Positions 487-64,000 of a stretch of 64,000 nt of DNA are shown one piece after another. A model generated the notes under the pieces. The model worked only from the letters and a program-made list of their open reading frames with translations. It did no database searches and was not told where the DNA came from. The DNA comes from Blepharisma stoltei ATCC 30299 (Eukaryota > Protista > Ciliophora), in NCBI GenBank assembly GCA_965603825.1, contig CBFDEM010000046.1:731341-795340 (forward strand), given 5' to 3'. Positions within the stretch are counted from its first letter, which is position 1, and each line of letters opens with the position of its first letter. A program made the translations under genes and the position numbers.

Positions 487-2634
487 TTAAGAAAGATATT
501 TCTGTTCAGGCAAGCTTCCTCTTCTGCTGTGTTGTATTGACTTAAAAAGCCTTTCGTATTCCTCCATATTTTCATCCTGTGGTGCTTCTATTGACGTCTG
601 TCTCCTATTCGGAAAATTATGTGACATCCAGAAAACTTCATTTTCTTCCAGCTGCACCAATATTTTTTCCTTTATACTAACTGACGGCCTAAACATATAA
701 AAAGTCTGATACAAAGGCCCCACAATATTTTTAATAAACCCTATCTGTGTTTTCGCTATTTCAGTCACTTCTCTATCACAATACATCGAAACCGGTATCC
801 CCAGTGATTTTTCCACATCGCCTTGCTCGAAAAATTCCTGAATCACCAGCGCGCACCATTTTGCATGTAAGTCCCTCTTTTTGGCAGCATGTCCTACATC
901 AGCTACTTTTATAGTCATTTTAAATAAATCAAGCCGAAAATCAGGGTCGTTCATATCTTGGACTTCATTTATGGCCAAATATTTTGCTTTAAAATGGCTG
1001 ACAATTTCAAAGTGTTTTGCTAAGTCTGTGGATAAAATCATTTCGATAATCATTTTTCTTACCAAGGACCATCTGTCAGGGTCTATTGATTTTATTATTT
1101 CTGAAGCGTTCTCTTTTAGGATTTTGAAAATTATGGAAGCGTGGTGCATCTCGAGGACACTGATGTCGTTGAATTGGATAGCTAAATCGTCCATGGTCTG
1201 GATTAGAAAACGATTACTTTTAGCTGGGTGGCCGACGTCGTGGCCTATAGAAGTTATAATTCCTGCTAGGAGTTCTAAACTATTGATTTCTTCAATAATA
1301 AAAGTATTGAAAACTATGTATATATATGAGCACATTACATCAGCGGCATGACAGGAATTGTGGTAAGGATTTTGATTGCTATAGCGACTTTCTATTACTT
1401 CTAAAAAGGTAGTCAAAGTTTTTTCGGATATATTAAAAATGTCTTTTAAGCCATATTTTACTATTGCATAGTACCCACAGGTCTGAAGAGGCCGACCTCC
1501 AGAACAATCATTAACAAAAAACGTGTTAAAGTTTCATTCTCTACCGATTTGGTTTAAAACGCCTTGAAGTTCTGCAACTCCGTATATAGAGTCTAATTTT
1601 ATTAAAGATTTTTGCCTTGGCGGAAGACTATAAATTGTTCCGCCTCTTTTAGATATAAAAGTTTGCTCAAAATAAATTTTGTCTTGCTCATCTAAACCTT
1701 TTGTAATATTTTCTATATTTGTATAATAAATATTTGTACTTCTTCTAAGCCTCGCTAAAATTGATTTTAAGATACTCATAGAAATAACAGCTTGTTCTTT
1801 GGCTTTTAAATCTTTAGAATCTTTTATGATGCTCAAAGACTCTATTGAAGAATTTATTGCATCTACAATTTCTTCAATGGCTGTATCTGCTTGCTTTTTA
1901 GCTCCATGTATAACCCCATCAGTCCTTAAGTCAGATTCAGAAATCGCAAAACTTTGGCTTTCTTTTGCAACTTCTAAATAATGGACTTTACTATTTTTCT
2001 GTTCTTTAAGAGCCAGAATTAGGTACCCAAGCACTATTAATAGACAAAAAAACTGAAAGATCGTTAAATTTGTACTTTGGTTTCCCATCATGTTTAAAAA
2101 CAAAGAAATAAATGCAAGGATACTGCTGATTATAATAAAGCTAGCTTTATTTTTCATTTTTTCTTGAGCAGCAATCGCCAATACGATAATTGCAGAAAGA
2201 CTGGGGAGGTAGCCTTTGCAGTCATTTTCTTGCATAATTACTGTAAAAGTGTTAGGATCTGAGAGAATTATAGTAATTCCTGATACCAAATATATCCAAT
2301 TTATCAATAATCACTTATCAAGAAGGTCAGATCCATATTTTAATTCTAGGATAAAAGCAATAGTAGATAATGCAAGACTAGCAGAAAGAATTATAACACC
2401 AAAAATAAATGCGCTTGCATTTATTTCTTGATCACTATAGCTCAGAATTATTGATAAAATGCATAAAATTAAAATTGCAGCATAAGACAAATAAAATTTG
2501 AAATTGGAGGAATTTGTATTTGGGTTTATATCTGATTGATTCAAAGTAATTTCAAGAGGAGGTCCAATTTGAGTTAGATCGCTTCCTATTTGATTTTTAT
2601 GCCCTGCTAAAGCTCCGTTTCCACTAAGTTCCAT
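487..2634 (-). CDS. Membrane-bound class I cyclic-nucleotide phosphodiesterase (~715 aa, ~6 N-terminal TM helices)
   Basis: Three in-frame ORFs join through TGA at 2311 and 1534 (giving GRE-W-NFN). The catalytic domain has NPYHNSCHAADV, HDVGHP, LEMHH, ADVGH, EFFEQGD and QIGFI. Ends at TAA. Confidence 0.92.
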
Positions 2635-52934: not shown

Positions 52935-53157
52935 TCTCACATACAAAAATTGCTAAATAACTTCACCATTAATGCTATTAAATATTTTGTCCGATCCAAA
53001 AGGGCCGTCCATAGTTTTCAGATAAATTTTGAAATTGAAGGCAGCCATTAAGGCTACCCAGCTGAGGAATGACCAGAGCAAGCTTATTCATATTAACAAG
53101 ATTAACAAGAATAATAAAGGATTCCGAGAATAATTAAGTAATTTATGCCCGAGTTAG

Positions 53158-53765
53158 TTAGCGAGAATAAGAAGATGAAGATCTTCTTCTGGAGCGAGAT
53201 CTATTCAAGTTAGAATGTGCTCTTAAAAACTTGTATATTTGAATTACCTTGAACTTGACTCTGATCTGTCTCTCCTGCTGTGCCTTGGAGGAGTGCGGCT
53301 ATGTGCAATTTACCTTCTAGATCTTCTCCGGTACCTTGGGGAGCTGGACCTTCTTCTTCTCCATCTATCTCTTCGCCTCATTTCATCAGGCTACATTACA
53401 ATTACTCCTTTCCGGCCTTCGCGAGCAAAAACAATTTTAAGCGTGCTGCCTTGGAGCTCGGTCCCATCTGTTTTTTCAAGAGCTGCCTTGGCATCATCGT
53501 ACTTGTTAAACTCGACAAAACAGAAGCCACGAGGACGCTGGGTGTAGTAATCGCGAGGGATATAGACATCTCGCACCTCGCCGTACTTGGAAAAGTGGTT
53601 GCGGATGTCTTCCGAACGGGTGTGAGGATCCTGTGTGAAAATTACGATATTCCGGACTAAGAGAGACACCCTGCGAGGAGGGGTGCGAGATCTCCGTGGG
53701 GAATGAGGGGAAGGAGAACGAGAATCATGGCGAGAATGAGGACTACTGCTGCCTGAGGAGGCCAT
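53158..53765 (-). CDS. SR splicing factor, SRSF10/SCL-like (RRM plus RS domain, ~171 aa, 4 introns)
   Basis: After splicing: SLLVRNI, DVYIPRDYYT.RPRGF.FVEF, RKGPDEMR and an RS tail. Confidence 0.88.
53201..53247 (-). other. Probable atypical 47-nt intron
   Basis: GTAATT...TTCTAACTTGAATAG; removal appends RSRSRRRSSSSYSR in frame before the stop. Confidence 0.65.
53299..53313 (-). other. 15-nt spliceosomal intron
   Basis: GTAAATTGCACATAG; removal deletes an in-frame TAA. Confidence 0.88.
53391..53405 (-). other. 15-nt spliceosomal intron
   Basis: GTAATTGTAATGTAG; ends in an in-frame TAG. Confidence 0.9.
53631..53645 (-). other. 15-nt spliceosomal intron (no stop codon)
   Basis: GTAATTTTCACACAG; removes the insertion VIFTQ after RNP2. 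Confidence 0.85.
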
Positions 53766-54387: not shown

Positions 54388-55923
54388 ATGGATTCTATCA
54401 CAAGCTCGATAATCGCCATCGCCCTTATTCTGGCATTTTCAGTAATCAGTATGTAGTTTGCCGGTGGGAACTTACTATCTTATTTAAATCAGGGATTCAG
54501 TGTAAAATCCTTTCGTTTCAAAGGATTTATTTCAAAAATCCCAATTCCTCCTTTGGTGATTTTAAAGTAGCTTGGAATGATATTAGGTGGAATAATAGCA
54601 GGCAACTTGCTTCACAGAGAAATATCTCTCCTTGATCCTGCTTGGGCATTGCAAATCAGAAATATTTCGATTGCTGTGATCTTATTGAAAGCAGGCTTAG
54701 GGCTAGATGTCCAAAAGTTAAAAGCTTCAAGTGGAGGCATTCTTCGTCTTTCCATAGTCCCGCAAGCTTTCGAAGCCTTAATAATTGCTCTATTATCATT
54801 TCTCATTTTTGACTTATCTTGGTCTTTTGGCTTTGCTATGGGCTTTATGATCGCTGCTGTATCTCCAGCTGTGCTTATTCCTTGCCTAAGCGAATTAATT
54901 CGTGATGGGTATGGGCTGGGATCTGGAATCCCAAGCATTCTGATGGCTGCAAACAGTCTGGACAATGTCATTGCCATTGCTTGTAATTCCTAATTAGTAT
55001 TTGGAGTGCTAATAAATATTGGGCTCGGAGGCTCAGGAGATTCTCTTATTTTTGGAAGTAACAATACAGCATATTATGCGTCAATTGGGCCTTTGATTGC
55101 TGTTGGCGGCATAATTGCGGGGATTATTTTGGGGATATTTTTTTTTCTTTTAACGAAATTAAATGACTGGGTAAAAGGAATTATCATTGCACTGGTATCA
55201 TATGGACTTGTATATGCTGCGTCTTACTTAAATATTTCTGGTTTAGGGTACCTCGGAGTCGTAATAAGCTCAACTTTTGCCGCAGTAAAATGGGGAAAAG
55301 ACTCAACTGCAAAAGTAGCTCGAGTTATAACACTGATATGGAAAGTATTCCAATATGCATTATTTGGACTGGTAGGAACTACCTTTTACTTCCCTCAATT
55401 ATCAGGTGACACTGTCGGTGAATGTTGTGCAATAATAATTATAGGCTCGTTTGTAAGAATTGTTACTGCTTACTATTCAGTTAGCTGGAGCAAGCTCGCA
55501 AATAAAGAAAAAGCATTTGTAGGGATCGCGTGGCTGCCTAAGGCGACAATTCAAGCGGCATTAGGAGGAGTTTTATTAGCAAAGGCTGAAAGTGATGATA
55601 AATATGATAAATATAAAGAGGATGGACTTATTATACTGACTGGATCTGTGTTCAGTATTCTTCTGACAGCCCCTATAGGGAGTATTTTGCTGACTCTGTT
55701 TGGACCAAAGCTGCTTCAAAAGTCTGTAAATGAGTCCAAAACTAATAAAGAAGCTTTTTCCCCTTTGCAAGGCTCTAAAGCAATTCAAAAAATTGCTCCA
55801 AAACCCAAAGGAAGAAGGTTGAGTGATGATCTTAGCGAAGATCTCGAGTATGCCAGGTATTATATGAGCTCAGAAGATATGGTAAGATCGGATATTGAGT
55901 CAATGAGAAGGAATAGTTTGTAG
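54388..55923 (+). CDS. NHA/SLC9B-type cation/H+ antiporter (~496 aa, 3 introns)
   Basis: After splicing: IPPLLGM, IL.KAGLGLD, AVSPAV..P, LDNV, LFGLVG, WLPKATIQAALG and ILLTAPIG. Confidence 0.92.
54442..54456 (+). other. 15-nt spliceosomal intron
   Basis: GTAATCAGTATGTAG; ends in an in-frame TAG. Confidence 0.85.
54556..54570 (+). other. 15-nt spliceosomal intron (GTG donor)
   Basis: GTGATTTTAAAGTAG; removal restores PPLLGM. Confidence 0.88.
54983..54997 (+). other. 15-nt spliceosomal intron
   Basis: GTAATTCCTAATTAG; contains an in-frame TAA. Confidence 0.9.
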
Positions 55924-60836: not shown

Positions 60837-63800
60837 TAGGGTGTTAGGGTGTTAGGGTGTTAGGGTGTTAGGGTGTTAGGGTGTTAGGGTGTTAGGGTGT
60901 TAGGGTGTTAGGGTGTTAGGGTGTTAGGGTGTTAGGGTGTTAGGGTGTTAGGGTGTTAGGGTGTTAGGGTGTTAGGGTGTTAGGGTGTTAGGGTGTTAGG
61001 GTGTTAGGGTGTTAGGGTGTTAGGGTGTTAGGGTGTTAGGGTGTTAGGGTGTTAGGGTGTTAGGGTGTTAGGGTGTTAGGGTGTTAGGGTGTTAGGGTGT
61101 TAGGGTGTTAGGGTGTTAGGGTGTTAGGGTGTTAGGGTGTTAGGGTGTTAGGGTGTTAGGGTGTTAGGGTGTTAGGGTGTTAGGGTGTTAGGGTGTTAGG
61201 GTGTTAGGGTGTTAGGGTGTTAGGGTGTTAGGGTGTTAGGGTGTTAGGGTGTTAGGGTGTTAGGGTGTTAGGGTGTTAGGGTGTTAGGGTGTTAGGGTGT
61301 TAGGGTGTTAGGGTGTTAGGGTGTTAGGGTGTTAGGGTGTTAGGGTGTTAGGGTGTTAGGGTGTTAGGGTGTTAGGGTGTTAGGGTGTTAGGGTGTTAGG
61401 GTGTTAGGGTGTTAGGGTGTTAGGGTGTTAGGGTGTTAGGGTGTTAGGGTGTTAGGGTGTTAGGGTGTTAGGGTGTTAGGGTGTTAGGGTGTTAGGGTGT
61501 TAGGGTGTTAGGGTGTTAGGGTGTTAGGGTGTTAGGGTGTTAGGGTGTTAGGGTGTTAGGGTGTTAGGGTGTTAGGGTGTTAGGGTGTTAGGGTGTTAGG
61601 GTGTTAGGGTGTTAGGGTGTTAGGGGTGTTAGGGTGTTAGGGTGTTAGGGTGTTAGGGTGTTAGGGTGTTAGGGTGTTAGGGTGTTAGGGTGTTAGGGTG
61701 TTAGGGTGTTAGGGTGTTAGGGTGTTAGGGTGTTAGGGTGTTAGGGTGTTAGGGTGTTAGGGTGTTAGGGTGTTAGGGTGTTAGGGTGTTAGGGTGTTAG
61801 GGTGTTAGGGTGTTAGGGTGTTAGGGTGTTAGGGTGTTAGGGTGTGTTAGGGTGTTAGGGTGTTAGGGGTGTTAGGGTGTTAGGGTGTTAGGGTGTTAGG
61901 GTGTTAGGGTGTTAGGGTGTTAGGGTGTTAGGGTGGTGTTAGGGTGTTAGGGTGTTAGGGTGTTAGGGTGTTAGGGTGTTAGGGTGTTAGGGGTGTTAGG
62001 GTGTTAGGGTGTTAGGGTGTTAGGGTGTTGGGTGTTAGGGTGTTAGGGTGTTAGGGTGTTAGGGTGTTAGGGTGTTAGGGGTGTTAGGGTGTTAGGGTGT
62101 TAGGGTGTTAGGGTGTTAGGGTGTTAGGGTGTTAGGGTGTTAGGGGTGTTAGGGTGTTAGGGTGTTAGGGTGTTAGGGTGTTAGGGTGTTGGGTGTTAGG
62201 GTGTTAGGGTGTTGGGTGTTAGGGTGTTTAGGGTGTTAGGGTGTTAGGGTGTTAGGGTGTTAGGGTGTTAGGGTGTTAGGGTGTTAGGGTGTTAGGGGTG
62301 TTAGGGTGTTGGGTGTTAGGGTGTTAGGGTGTTAGGGTGTTAGGGTGTTGGGTGTTGGGTGTTAGGGTGTTAGGGTGTTAGGGTGTTAGGGTGTTAGGGT
62401 GTTGGGTGTTAGGGTGTGGGTGTAGGGTGTTAGGGTGTTAGGGTGTTAGGGTGTTAGGGTGTTAGGGTGTTAGGGTGTTAGGGTGTTAGGGTGTTAGGGT
62501 GTTAGGGTGTTAGGGTGTTAGGGTGTTTGGGTGTTAGGGTGTTAGGGTGTTAGGGTGTTAGGGTGTTAGGGTGTTAGGGTGTTAGGGTGTTAGGGTGTTA
62601 GGGTGTTAGGGTGTTAGGGTGTTGGGTGTAGGGTGTTAGGGTGTTAGGGTGTTGGGTGTTGGGTGTTAGGGTGTTGGGTGTTAGGGTGTTAGGGTGTTAG
62701 GGTGTTAGGGTGTTAGGGTGTTGGGTGTGGGTGTTAGGGTGTTAGGGTGTTAGGGTGTTAGGGTGTTAGGGTGTTGGGTGTGTTAGGGTGTTGGGTGTTA
62801 GGGTGTTAGGGTGTTGGGTGTTAGGGTGTTAGGGTGTTAGGGTGTTTGGGTGTTGTGGGTGTTAGGGTGTTAGGGTGTTGGGTGTTAGGGTGTTAGGGGT
62901 GTTAGGGTGTTAGGGTGTTAGGGTGTTAGGGTGTTGGGTGTTTGGGTGTTAGGGTGTTGGGTGTTAGGGTGTTAGGGTGTTAGGGTGTTAGGGTGTTAGG
63001 GTGTTAGGGTGTTGGGTGTTAGGGTGTTAGGGTGTTGGGTGTTGGGTGTTAGGGTGTTAGGGTGTTAGGGTGTTGGTGTTAGGGTGTTAGGGGTGTTAGG
63101 GTGTTGGGTGTAGGGTGTTGGGTGTTAGGGTGTTAGGGTGTTAGGGTGTTGGGTGTAGGGTGTTAGGGTGTTGGGTAGGGTGTTAGGGTGTTAGGGTGTT
63201 AGGGTGTTAGGGTGTTAGGGGTGTTAGGGTGTTAGGGTGTTAGGGTGTTAGGGTGTTAGGGTGTTAGGGTGTTAGGGTGTTAGGGTGTTAGGGTGTTAGG
63301 GTGTTAGGGTGTTAGGGTGTTGGGTGTTGGGTGTTAGGGTGTTAGGGTGTTAGGGTGTTAGGGTGTTAGGGTGTTAGGGTGTTAGGGTGTTAGGGTGTTA
63401 GGGTGTTAGGGTGTTAGGGTGTTAGGGTGTTAGGGTGTTAGGGTGTTAGGGTGTTAGGGTGTTAGGGTGTTAGGGTGTGTGGGTGTTAGGGTGTTAGGGT
63501 GTTAGGGTGTTAGGGTGTTAGGGGTGGGTGTTAGGGTGTTAGGGTGTTAGGGTGTTAGGGTGTTAGGGTGTTGGGTGTAGGGTGTTAGGGTGTAGGGTGT
63601 TGGGTGTTAGGGTGTTAGGGTGTTAGGGTGTTAGGGGTTAGGGTGTTAGGGTGTTAGGGGTGGGTGTTAGGGTGTTAGGGTGTTAGGGTGTTAGGGTGTT
63701 AGGGTGTTAGGGTGTTAGGGTGTTAGGGTGGTTGGGTGTAGGGTGTTAGGGTGTTAGGGTGTGGTGTTAGGGTGTTAGGGTGTTGGGTGTTAGGGGTGTT

Positions 63801-64000
63801 AGGGTGTTAGGGTGTTAGGGTGTTAGGGTGTTAGGGTGTTAGGGTGTTAGGGTGTTAGGGGTTGGGTGTAGGGTGTTAGGGTGTTAGGGTGTTAGGGTGT
63901 TAGGGTGTTAGGGTGTTAGGGTGTTAGGGTGTTAGGGTGTTAGGGGTTAGGGTGTTAGGGTGTTAGGGTGTTAGGGTGTTTAGGGTGTGTTAGGGTGTTA
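60837..64000 (+). repeat. Telomere (TGTTAGGG)n, complement (CCCTAACA)n
   Basis: 8-bp tandem array to the window end, G-rich strand running toward the end; this is the heterotrich telomere unit. Confidence 0.98.

Follow-up and report, generated by a model that had tools for sequence, protein, structure and literature searches.

Structure of the SR protein gene

The window analysed here, a 64,000-nt stretch of Blepharisma stoltei DNA on contig C46 of the 41.46-Mb, 64-contig assembly that we scanned, contains on its minus strand a gene for an SCL/SRSF10-like SR protein with a single RRM, three introns of 15 nt and a fourth of 47 nt. Its transcripts were followed in contigs from sequencing runs X1, X2, X4 and X5, which we take to be RNA because the tiny introns are missing from them. 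The coding part of exon 1 (53646..53765, ATG at 53765) encodes an N-terminal S/P/R-rich extension and the start of the RRM; exon 2 (53406..53630) encodes the core of the RRM (Pfam RRM_1, E 1e-19); the RS domain starts in exon 3 (53314..53390; contigs and local translation) and continues through exon 4 (53248..53298), which terminates in S-S-R(AG) and ends exactly where an X1 contig ends, at 53248. The three tiny introns all carry A at +10: intron 1 (53631..53645), stop-free and in frame, is absent from the X1, X2, X4 and X5 contigs; intron 2 (53391..53405) is absent from X1, X2 and X5, and a loose end in X4 is compatible with its junction; intron 3 (53299..53313) is absent from X1 and X5 but kept in the main X2 contig. 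The original prediction had assigned 15 nt and A at +10 to all 13 other introns of the window; our check covered the five seen in RNA contigs (the three above, 54555-54569 and 54983-54997), and all five fit.

Intron 4 (53201..53247) has GT-AG ends and is partly retained, as judged from the sequence, the RNA contigs and the alignment of homologues. When it is kept, an in-frame TAA (53244..53246) terminates a 158-aa product, at the end point of MMETSP protein P0001; when it is removed, the coding part of exon 5 (53158..53200, placed by homologues and an X1 contig start at 53202) supplies 13 further RS residues and a stop, giving 171 aa, and is followed by a 3′ UTR with an approximate end (53004..53157; contig ends 53004-53051). 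SR proteins are built of an N-terminal RRM followed by an R/S-rich RS domain at least about 50 residues long. The spliced form has this composition, with RRM_1 and a 56-aa RS region (41 R or S) ending in RSRSRRRSSSSYSR, whereas the RS region of the retained form is only 43 aa.

The best non-ciliate protein matches are SCL30/33, next SRSF10/12, and a paralog in the same genome is annotated as SCL25A. In our tree the heterotrich proteins form one clade (support 99/99) on a backbone without resolution, which gives no placement among SCL, SRSF10/12 and SRSF2.

Two further features of the tiny introns were observed. Intron 1 sits inside the RRM near RNP2, and its retention in MMETSP P0001/P0002 adds five residues. 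Retention of intron 3 likewise reads AGG TAA, and the main X2 contig keeps introns 3 and 4 together, which may give the RS domain three possible lengths. The gene itself lies about 7 kb from a chromosome end: from about 60840 to 64000 the window consists of more than 3 kb of CCCTAACA telomere repeat.

Intron 4 contains a branch sequence complementary to U2 snRNA

The AG dinucleotides of intron 4 end at +18, +26, +28 and +47, with none at +15 or +16. Translation reproduced what had been predicted for the possible outcomes: retention stops at once (AGG TAA), the +18 acceptor gives S-F-stop, and the +47 acceptor appends the RS tail; the +26 acceptor shares its frame with +47. The sequence TTCTAAC occupies +33 to +39 (53209..53215), which places the predicted branch A at +38 (53210), at −10 from the intron end. 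Tiny introns are 15-16 nt long, and their branch A, at +10/+11, lies 6-7 nt before the intron end; intron 4 is 47 nt long, with G at −6 and T at −7. Its GT...AG ends, as well as those of ten of ten long homologues, are of the U2 type. Both copies of U2 snRNA in this genome carry GUAGUA, which pairs with the branch sequence at five of six positions, or eight of ten when the extension is included. The genome also has an SF1/BBP gene with HH and KH domains. This gene (L116, G000:C18:235590) is single, encodes a ULM-like KSRW, a helix-hairpin and KH, and has been retained though the tiny introns have no branch consensus.

Upstream of the branch site lies a purine-rich element (53217..53225) that reads TAAGAGCAC here and TAAAGAACAC in four Stentor-type introns. 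In six Blepharisma/Stentor-type introns the aligned element resembles the SRSF10 binding motif, AAAGACAAA (PMC8522700), and it is missing from three homologues (L030, L032 and L036). We regard it, from this resemblance, as a candidate SR-binding site and as a lead only. A search of intron 4 for structured RNA or snoRNA returned no Rfam match and a folding z of −0.86.

The long intron is conserved among heterotrichs

A long intron (29-45 nt) occupies the same position in the in-genome paralog, in Stentor coeruleus, in five Stentor-like genomes and in two other heterotrich lineages. All four intron positions recur in the paralog, on C20, where the fourth intron (441003-441047) is 45 nt, contains CACTAAC and gives the same stop when retained; two of the paralog's introns are 16 nt. 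The homologous intron of S. coeruleus (MPUH01000525.1) is 43 nt and those of the five Stentor-like metagenome contigs are 42, 42, 43, 39 and 42 nt. ACTAAC occurs in each of these introns, and the exon-5 tail in the six genes is identical in length to that of B. stoltei. A more distant heterotrich (L029, L132) has a 35-nt intron with CTTAC, and a probably Spirostomum-like locus (L036) has a 29-nt intron with GCTAAC. The latter was the one heterotrich locus added by a scan of JGI contigs, whose other matches were plant or unrelated RRMs. One exception was found: L131, also Spirostomum-like and in the tree the sister of the 29-nt lineage, carries a canonical intron of 15 nt here (about 1542-1556).

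The features that set intron 4 apart recur in these homologues. CTAAC is found in the introns of nine of ten lineages at this site vs. none of 23 tiny introns that were chosen from the same genes by their context, a comparison in which the rows are related and not independent; the chance of CTAAC within a 5-position window is about 0.8%. Pairing with the U2 six-mer extends over 4-6 of six positions in the long introns vs. a mean of 2.1 in the 23 tiny introns. None of the eight Blepharisma/Stentor-type long introns has A at −6 or −7; retention reads AGG TAA in ten of ten long homologues; and, while the intron lengths cover all three frames, the distal AG alone yields the RS tail in every case, the internal AGs of homologous introns mostly failing to restore it.

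The prediction of a 47-nt intron (53247-53201) with a CTAAC branch sequence is borne out: the intron is as described in B. stoltei and is conserved in heterotrichs. Two of its finer points did not hold. The start of intron 4 had been described as a standard tiny intron ending in AC; this is a local look-alike, as the corresponding bases in the paralog are T (+10) and CA (+14/15) and other orthologs vary, and we reject a mutated 15-nt intron as a conserved feature: all that is conserved is that neither +15 nor +16 ends an AG. The proposed +18 and +26 acceptors lack conservation in frame, we saw no sign that either is used, and the context of +26 is altered in a second Blepharisma species.

Compared with this second species (organism B), intron 4, exon 5 and the UTR together show 3 differences in 206 positions vs. 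24 in 473 for the upstream coding sequence (p=0.03, for one contig pair); intron 4 differs at 1 of 47 positions and the 3′ UTR at 2 of 116 nt.

Several side observations concern the region downstream of the long intron. Positions 53079 to 53223 are identical in both Blepharisma species; the last exon and long 3′ UTR (53042-53200), which adjoin the 3′ end of a convergent WD40-like gene, have a folding z of −2.1. A fifth, tiny intron lies 3′ of the long one in the paralog (L002, about 1245-1260, minus strand, 16 nt) and in the 35-nt lineage (L029, 964-978, 15 nt).

Spliced and retained RNAs

The RNA evidence comprises assembled contigs and MMETSP proteins; contigs give no splice ratios, and they hold no junction read for this gene. 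The X1 contigs are split into one of 568 nt (53860-53248) and one of 199 nt (53202-53004). In a k=31 graph simulation, a mixture of retained RNA and RNA spliced at +47 reproduced the X1 contig ends exactly; a sole spliced form using +18, +26 or +28, skipping of exon 4, and full splicing alone each failed to do so. Some minor use of the +18, +26 and +28 acceptors may occur alongside +47. Intron 4 is kept in the main contigs of X2 and X5 and in MMETSP P0001/P0002; the source of X5 is probably a second organism, B. japonicum, about 96% identical.

Among the homologues, MMETSP protein P0075 reads across the 45-nt intron of the paralog and is thus a spliced product, while for the 35-nt locus there is both a retained product, P0014 (154 aa), and a spliced one, P0076 (184 aa), which belong to the same cluster and have consecutive transcript numbers. 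The P0075, P0076 and P0014 products, the retained contigs and the X1 contig ends establish that both RNA forms exist, for homologues directly and for this gene indirectly. As predicted, then, splicing alters the length of the RS tail, with some transcripts spliced at +47 and others retained. Public gene models for the Stentor ortholog and for the paralog in Blepharisma terminate at the retained TAA, as seen in the annotated homologues OMJ78367.1 (149 aa) and CAG9318264.1 (142 aa), and we found no spliced Stentor protein in the database.

The signature is not enriched in the genome

A scan of the genome for further CTAAC introns, as had been proposed, gave 16 matches to the exact signature vs. 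26 for a CATAC control. We therefore reject a large class of such introns; a handful at most use the signature, and a second mode would serve few. Beyond the two SR paralogs, the 14 other matches lie mostly within ORFs, in intergenic sequence or on 5S rRNA-like sequence, and convincing ORF restoration was found for none of the 14. Two intergenic stretches of the form AG|GTAAT...CTAAC...AG, L119 1204-1241 (38 nt) and L121 1233-1275 (43 nt), could be introns of untranslated regions or chance matches.

Discussion

Intron 4 is a conserved, genuine major-spliceosome intron. It shares the GTAA donor, the AG acceptor and the spliceosome with the tiny introns of Stentor, Blepharisma and Fabrea (PMC9942806, PMC9505925, PMC9004412), but it is three times longer, its donor-to-branch distance would be 37 rather than 9-10 nt and its branch-to-end distance 10 rather than 6-7 nt, and it has a U2-complementary branch sequence and room for a regulatory element. 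According to the available supplementary text of PMC9942806, 97% of B. stoltei introns have a length of 15 or 16 nt, longer ones are spliced less, and the minor spliceosome is absent. Longer introns do occur in heterotrichs, as in the tail of the Stentor pyriformis length distribution (10.1101/2024.12.19.629502) and in the 3% of B. stoltei introns outside 15/16 nt, although the available text of these sources mentions neither a conserved case nor a branch motif or a function for them; Stentor intron lengths besides 15/16 nt were formerly ascribed to mis-assembly. Our literature search, thin on subscription journals, found no published description of intron 4, which is apparently undescribed.

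We propose, with a probability of about 0.55, that conserved partial retention of intron 4 toggles the last 13 RS residues of the protein, probably under feedback control. The default 15/16-nt geometry would be unable to remove an intron with no AG at +15/+16 and no A at −6/−7, and for the latter reason could serve none of the eight Blepharisma/Stentor-type long introns. Intron 4 would instead be defined by the branch sequence 8-10 nt before the acceptor, through pairing with U2 and probably also recognition by SF1/BBP. Spliced in only some transcripts and fitting the default geometry poorly, it would be the rate-limiting intron, and its retention would set the ratio of short-RS to long-RS protein, if the short form is translated, or the amount of the long form. 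Selection across heterotrichs may keep partial retention as a means of controlling how active or how abundant the SR protein is: because distant relatives keep the same arrangement, a built-in control is probable. The feedback would most likely come from the SR protein itself or from general splicing capacity; self-feedback is suggested by analogy with SCL33 and SRSF10 together with the purine element that resembles the SRSF10 motif.

Arabidopsis SCL33 (whose intron contains GAAG motifs, PMC4598772) and mammalian SRSF10 (PMC8522700, PMC7244321) autoregulate through their own introns. The B. stoltei gene resembles such cases in encoding a single-RRM SR protein with a conserved alternative event that leads to an early stop, as found in unproductive splicing of SR genes, and resembles SRSF10 further in its predicted short- and long-RS-tail isoforms and in its proposed control through an intron of unusual class. 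It differs in that a last intron of 47 nt is retained, where other SR genes use a poison exon, competing minor and major donors, or an alternative last exon; according to the available supplement of PMC9942806, Blepharisma is without a minor spliceosome. By analogy, the event may work like the conserved alternative events of SR genes, with membership of that class depending on feedback and decay.

Several observations count against a regulated toggle: some assemblies keep tiny introns of this gene as well (X2 has intron 3, P0001 has intron 1), the site tolerates a 15-nt intron in L131, the gain is only 13 residues, and the purine element is missing from three homologues. The first two equally favour the main rival, that intron 4 is a relic that never shrank, with CTAAC kept just because a long intron needs it for splicing and with the retained RNA reflecting slow splicing or noise without a role. 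Retention would then need no regulation, since longer Blepharisma introns are generally spliced less efficiently (available supplement of PMC9942806), and it is this, together with the tolerance seen in L131, that makes the relic our main rival. We nevertheless consider it unlikely, as the long form persists in both Blepharisma paralogs, in Stentor and in two further lineages while nearly all other introns are 15-16 nt, the intron is nearly identical between two Blepharisma species (1/47) and has an internal motif in common with Stentor, and the host gene is a splicing regulator.

An attenuator by unproductive splicing, in which NMD or nuclear holding would keep the retained RNA from being translated into the short protein and the intron would determine how much full-length protein is made, would follow the usual logic of plant and animal SR genes (PMC4598772, PMC8522700) and agrees with the stop created by retention in all homologues and with the two UPF1 genes of the genome. 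We judge it improbable: in two runs the main contig is of the retained form, which is also among the MMETSP proteins, the premature stop precedes the normal one by just about 87 nt and lies within the last intron, and both protein forms share a similar S-S-(x-S)-R terminus. That there is no functional intron at all, the TAA at 53246 being the normal stop with a conserved 3′ UTR behind it, or poly(A) addition to most RNAs occurring inside the 47 nt, would suit the public annotations that end here, the fall in X1 depth from 731 to 158 past the site and the absence of a direct junction from the contig data of this gene, but is very hard to sustain, as P0075 and P0076 are products of spliced transcripts, the frame is restored over three length classes, the X1 ends fit +47 exactly, and the X2 and X5 contigs continue into the UTR, with depth tapering at 3′ ends regardless.

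The gene bears on how a spliceosome excises introns of 15 nt and on whether branch-sequence recognition still has a part in it. Beyond the regulated toggle, we raise as a speculation, doubtful at present, that the heterotrich spliceosome has two routes: a fixed-distance default for 15/16-nt introns with little branch pairing, and an SF1/U2-dependent branch search for a few regulatory introns, with the long SR intron reading out the second route and feeding back on RS-tail length.

These results bear on two published views. The first, found in the available supplement of PMC9942806, is that these introns leave little space for regulatory elements. The second comes from a Stentor survey in which SR proteins went undetected (PMC9505925); the S. 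coeruleus locus L021 1201-1778 (SteCoe_21851, OMJ78367.1) encodes an RRM-RS protein, and its gene model ends early at the long intron.

Because one transcript combines a classical intron with three tiny ones, and the homologues have introns of 15, 29, 35, 39-43, 45 and 47 nt at one site, the effects of SF1, U2AF or SR knock-down could be compared within one RNA. RNAi works in Stentor. The 15-nt intron of L131, whether shrunk or never lengthened, provides a natural control.
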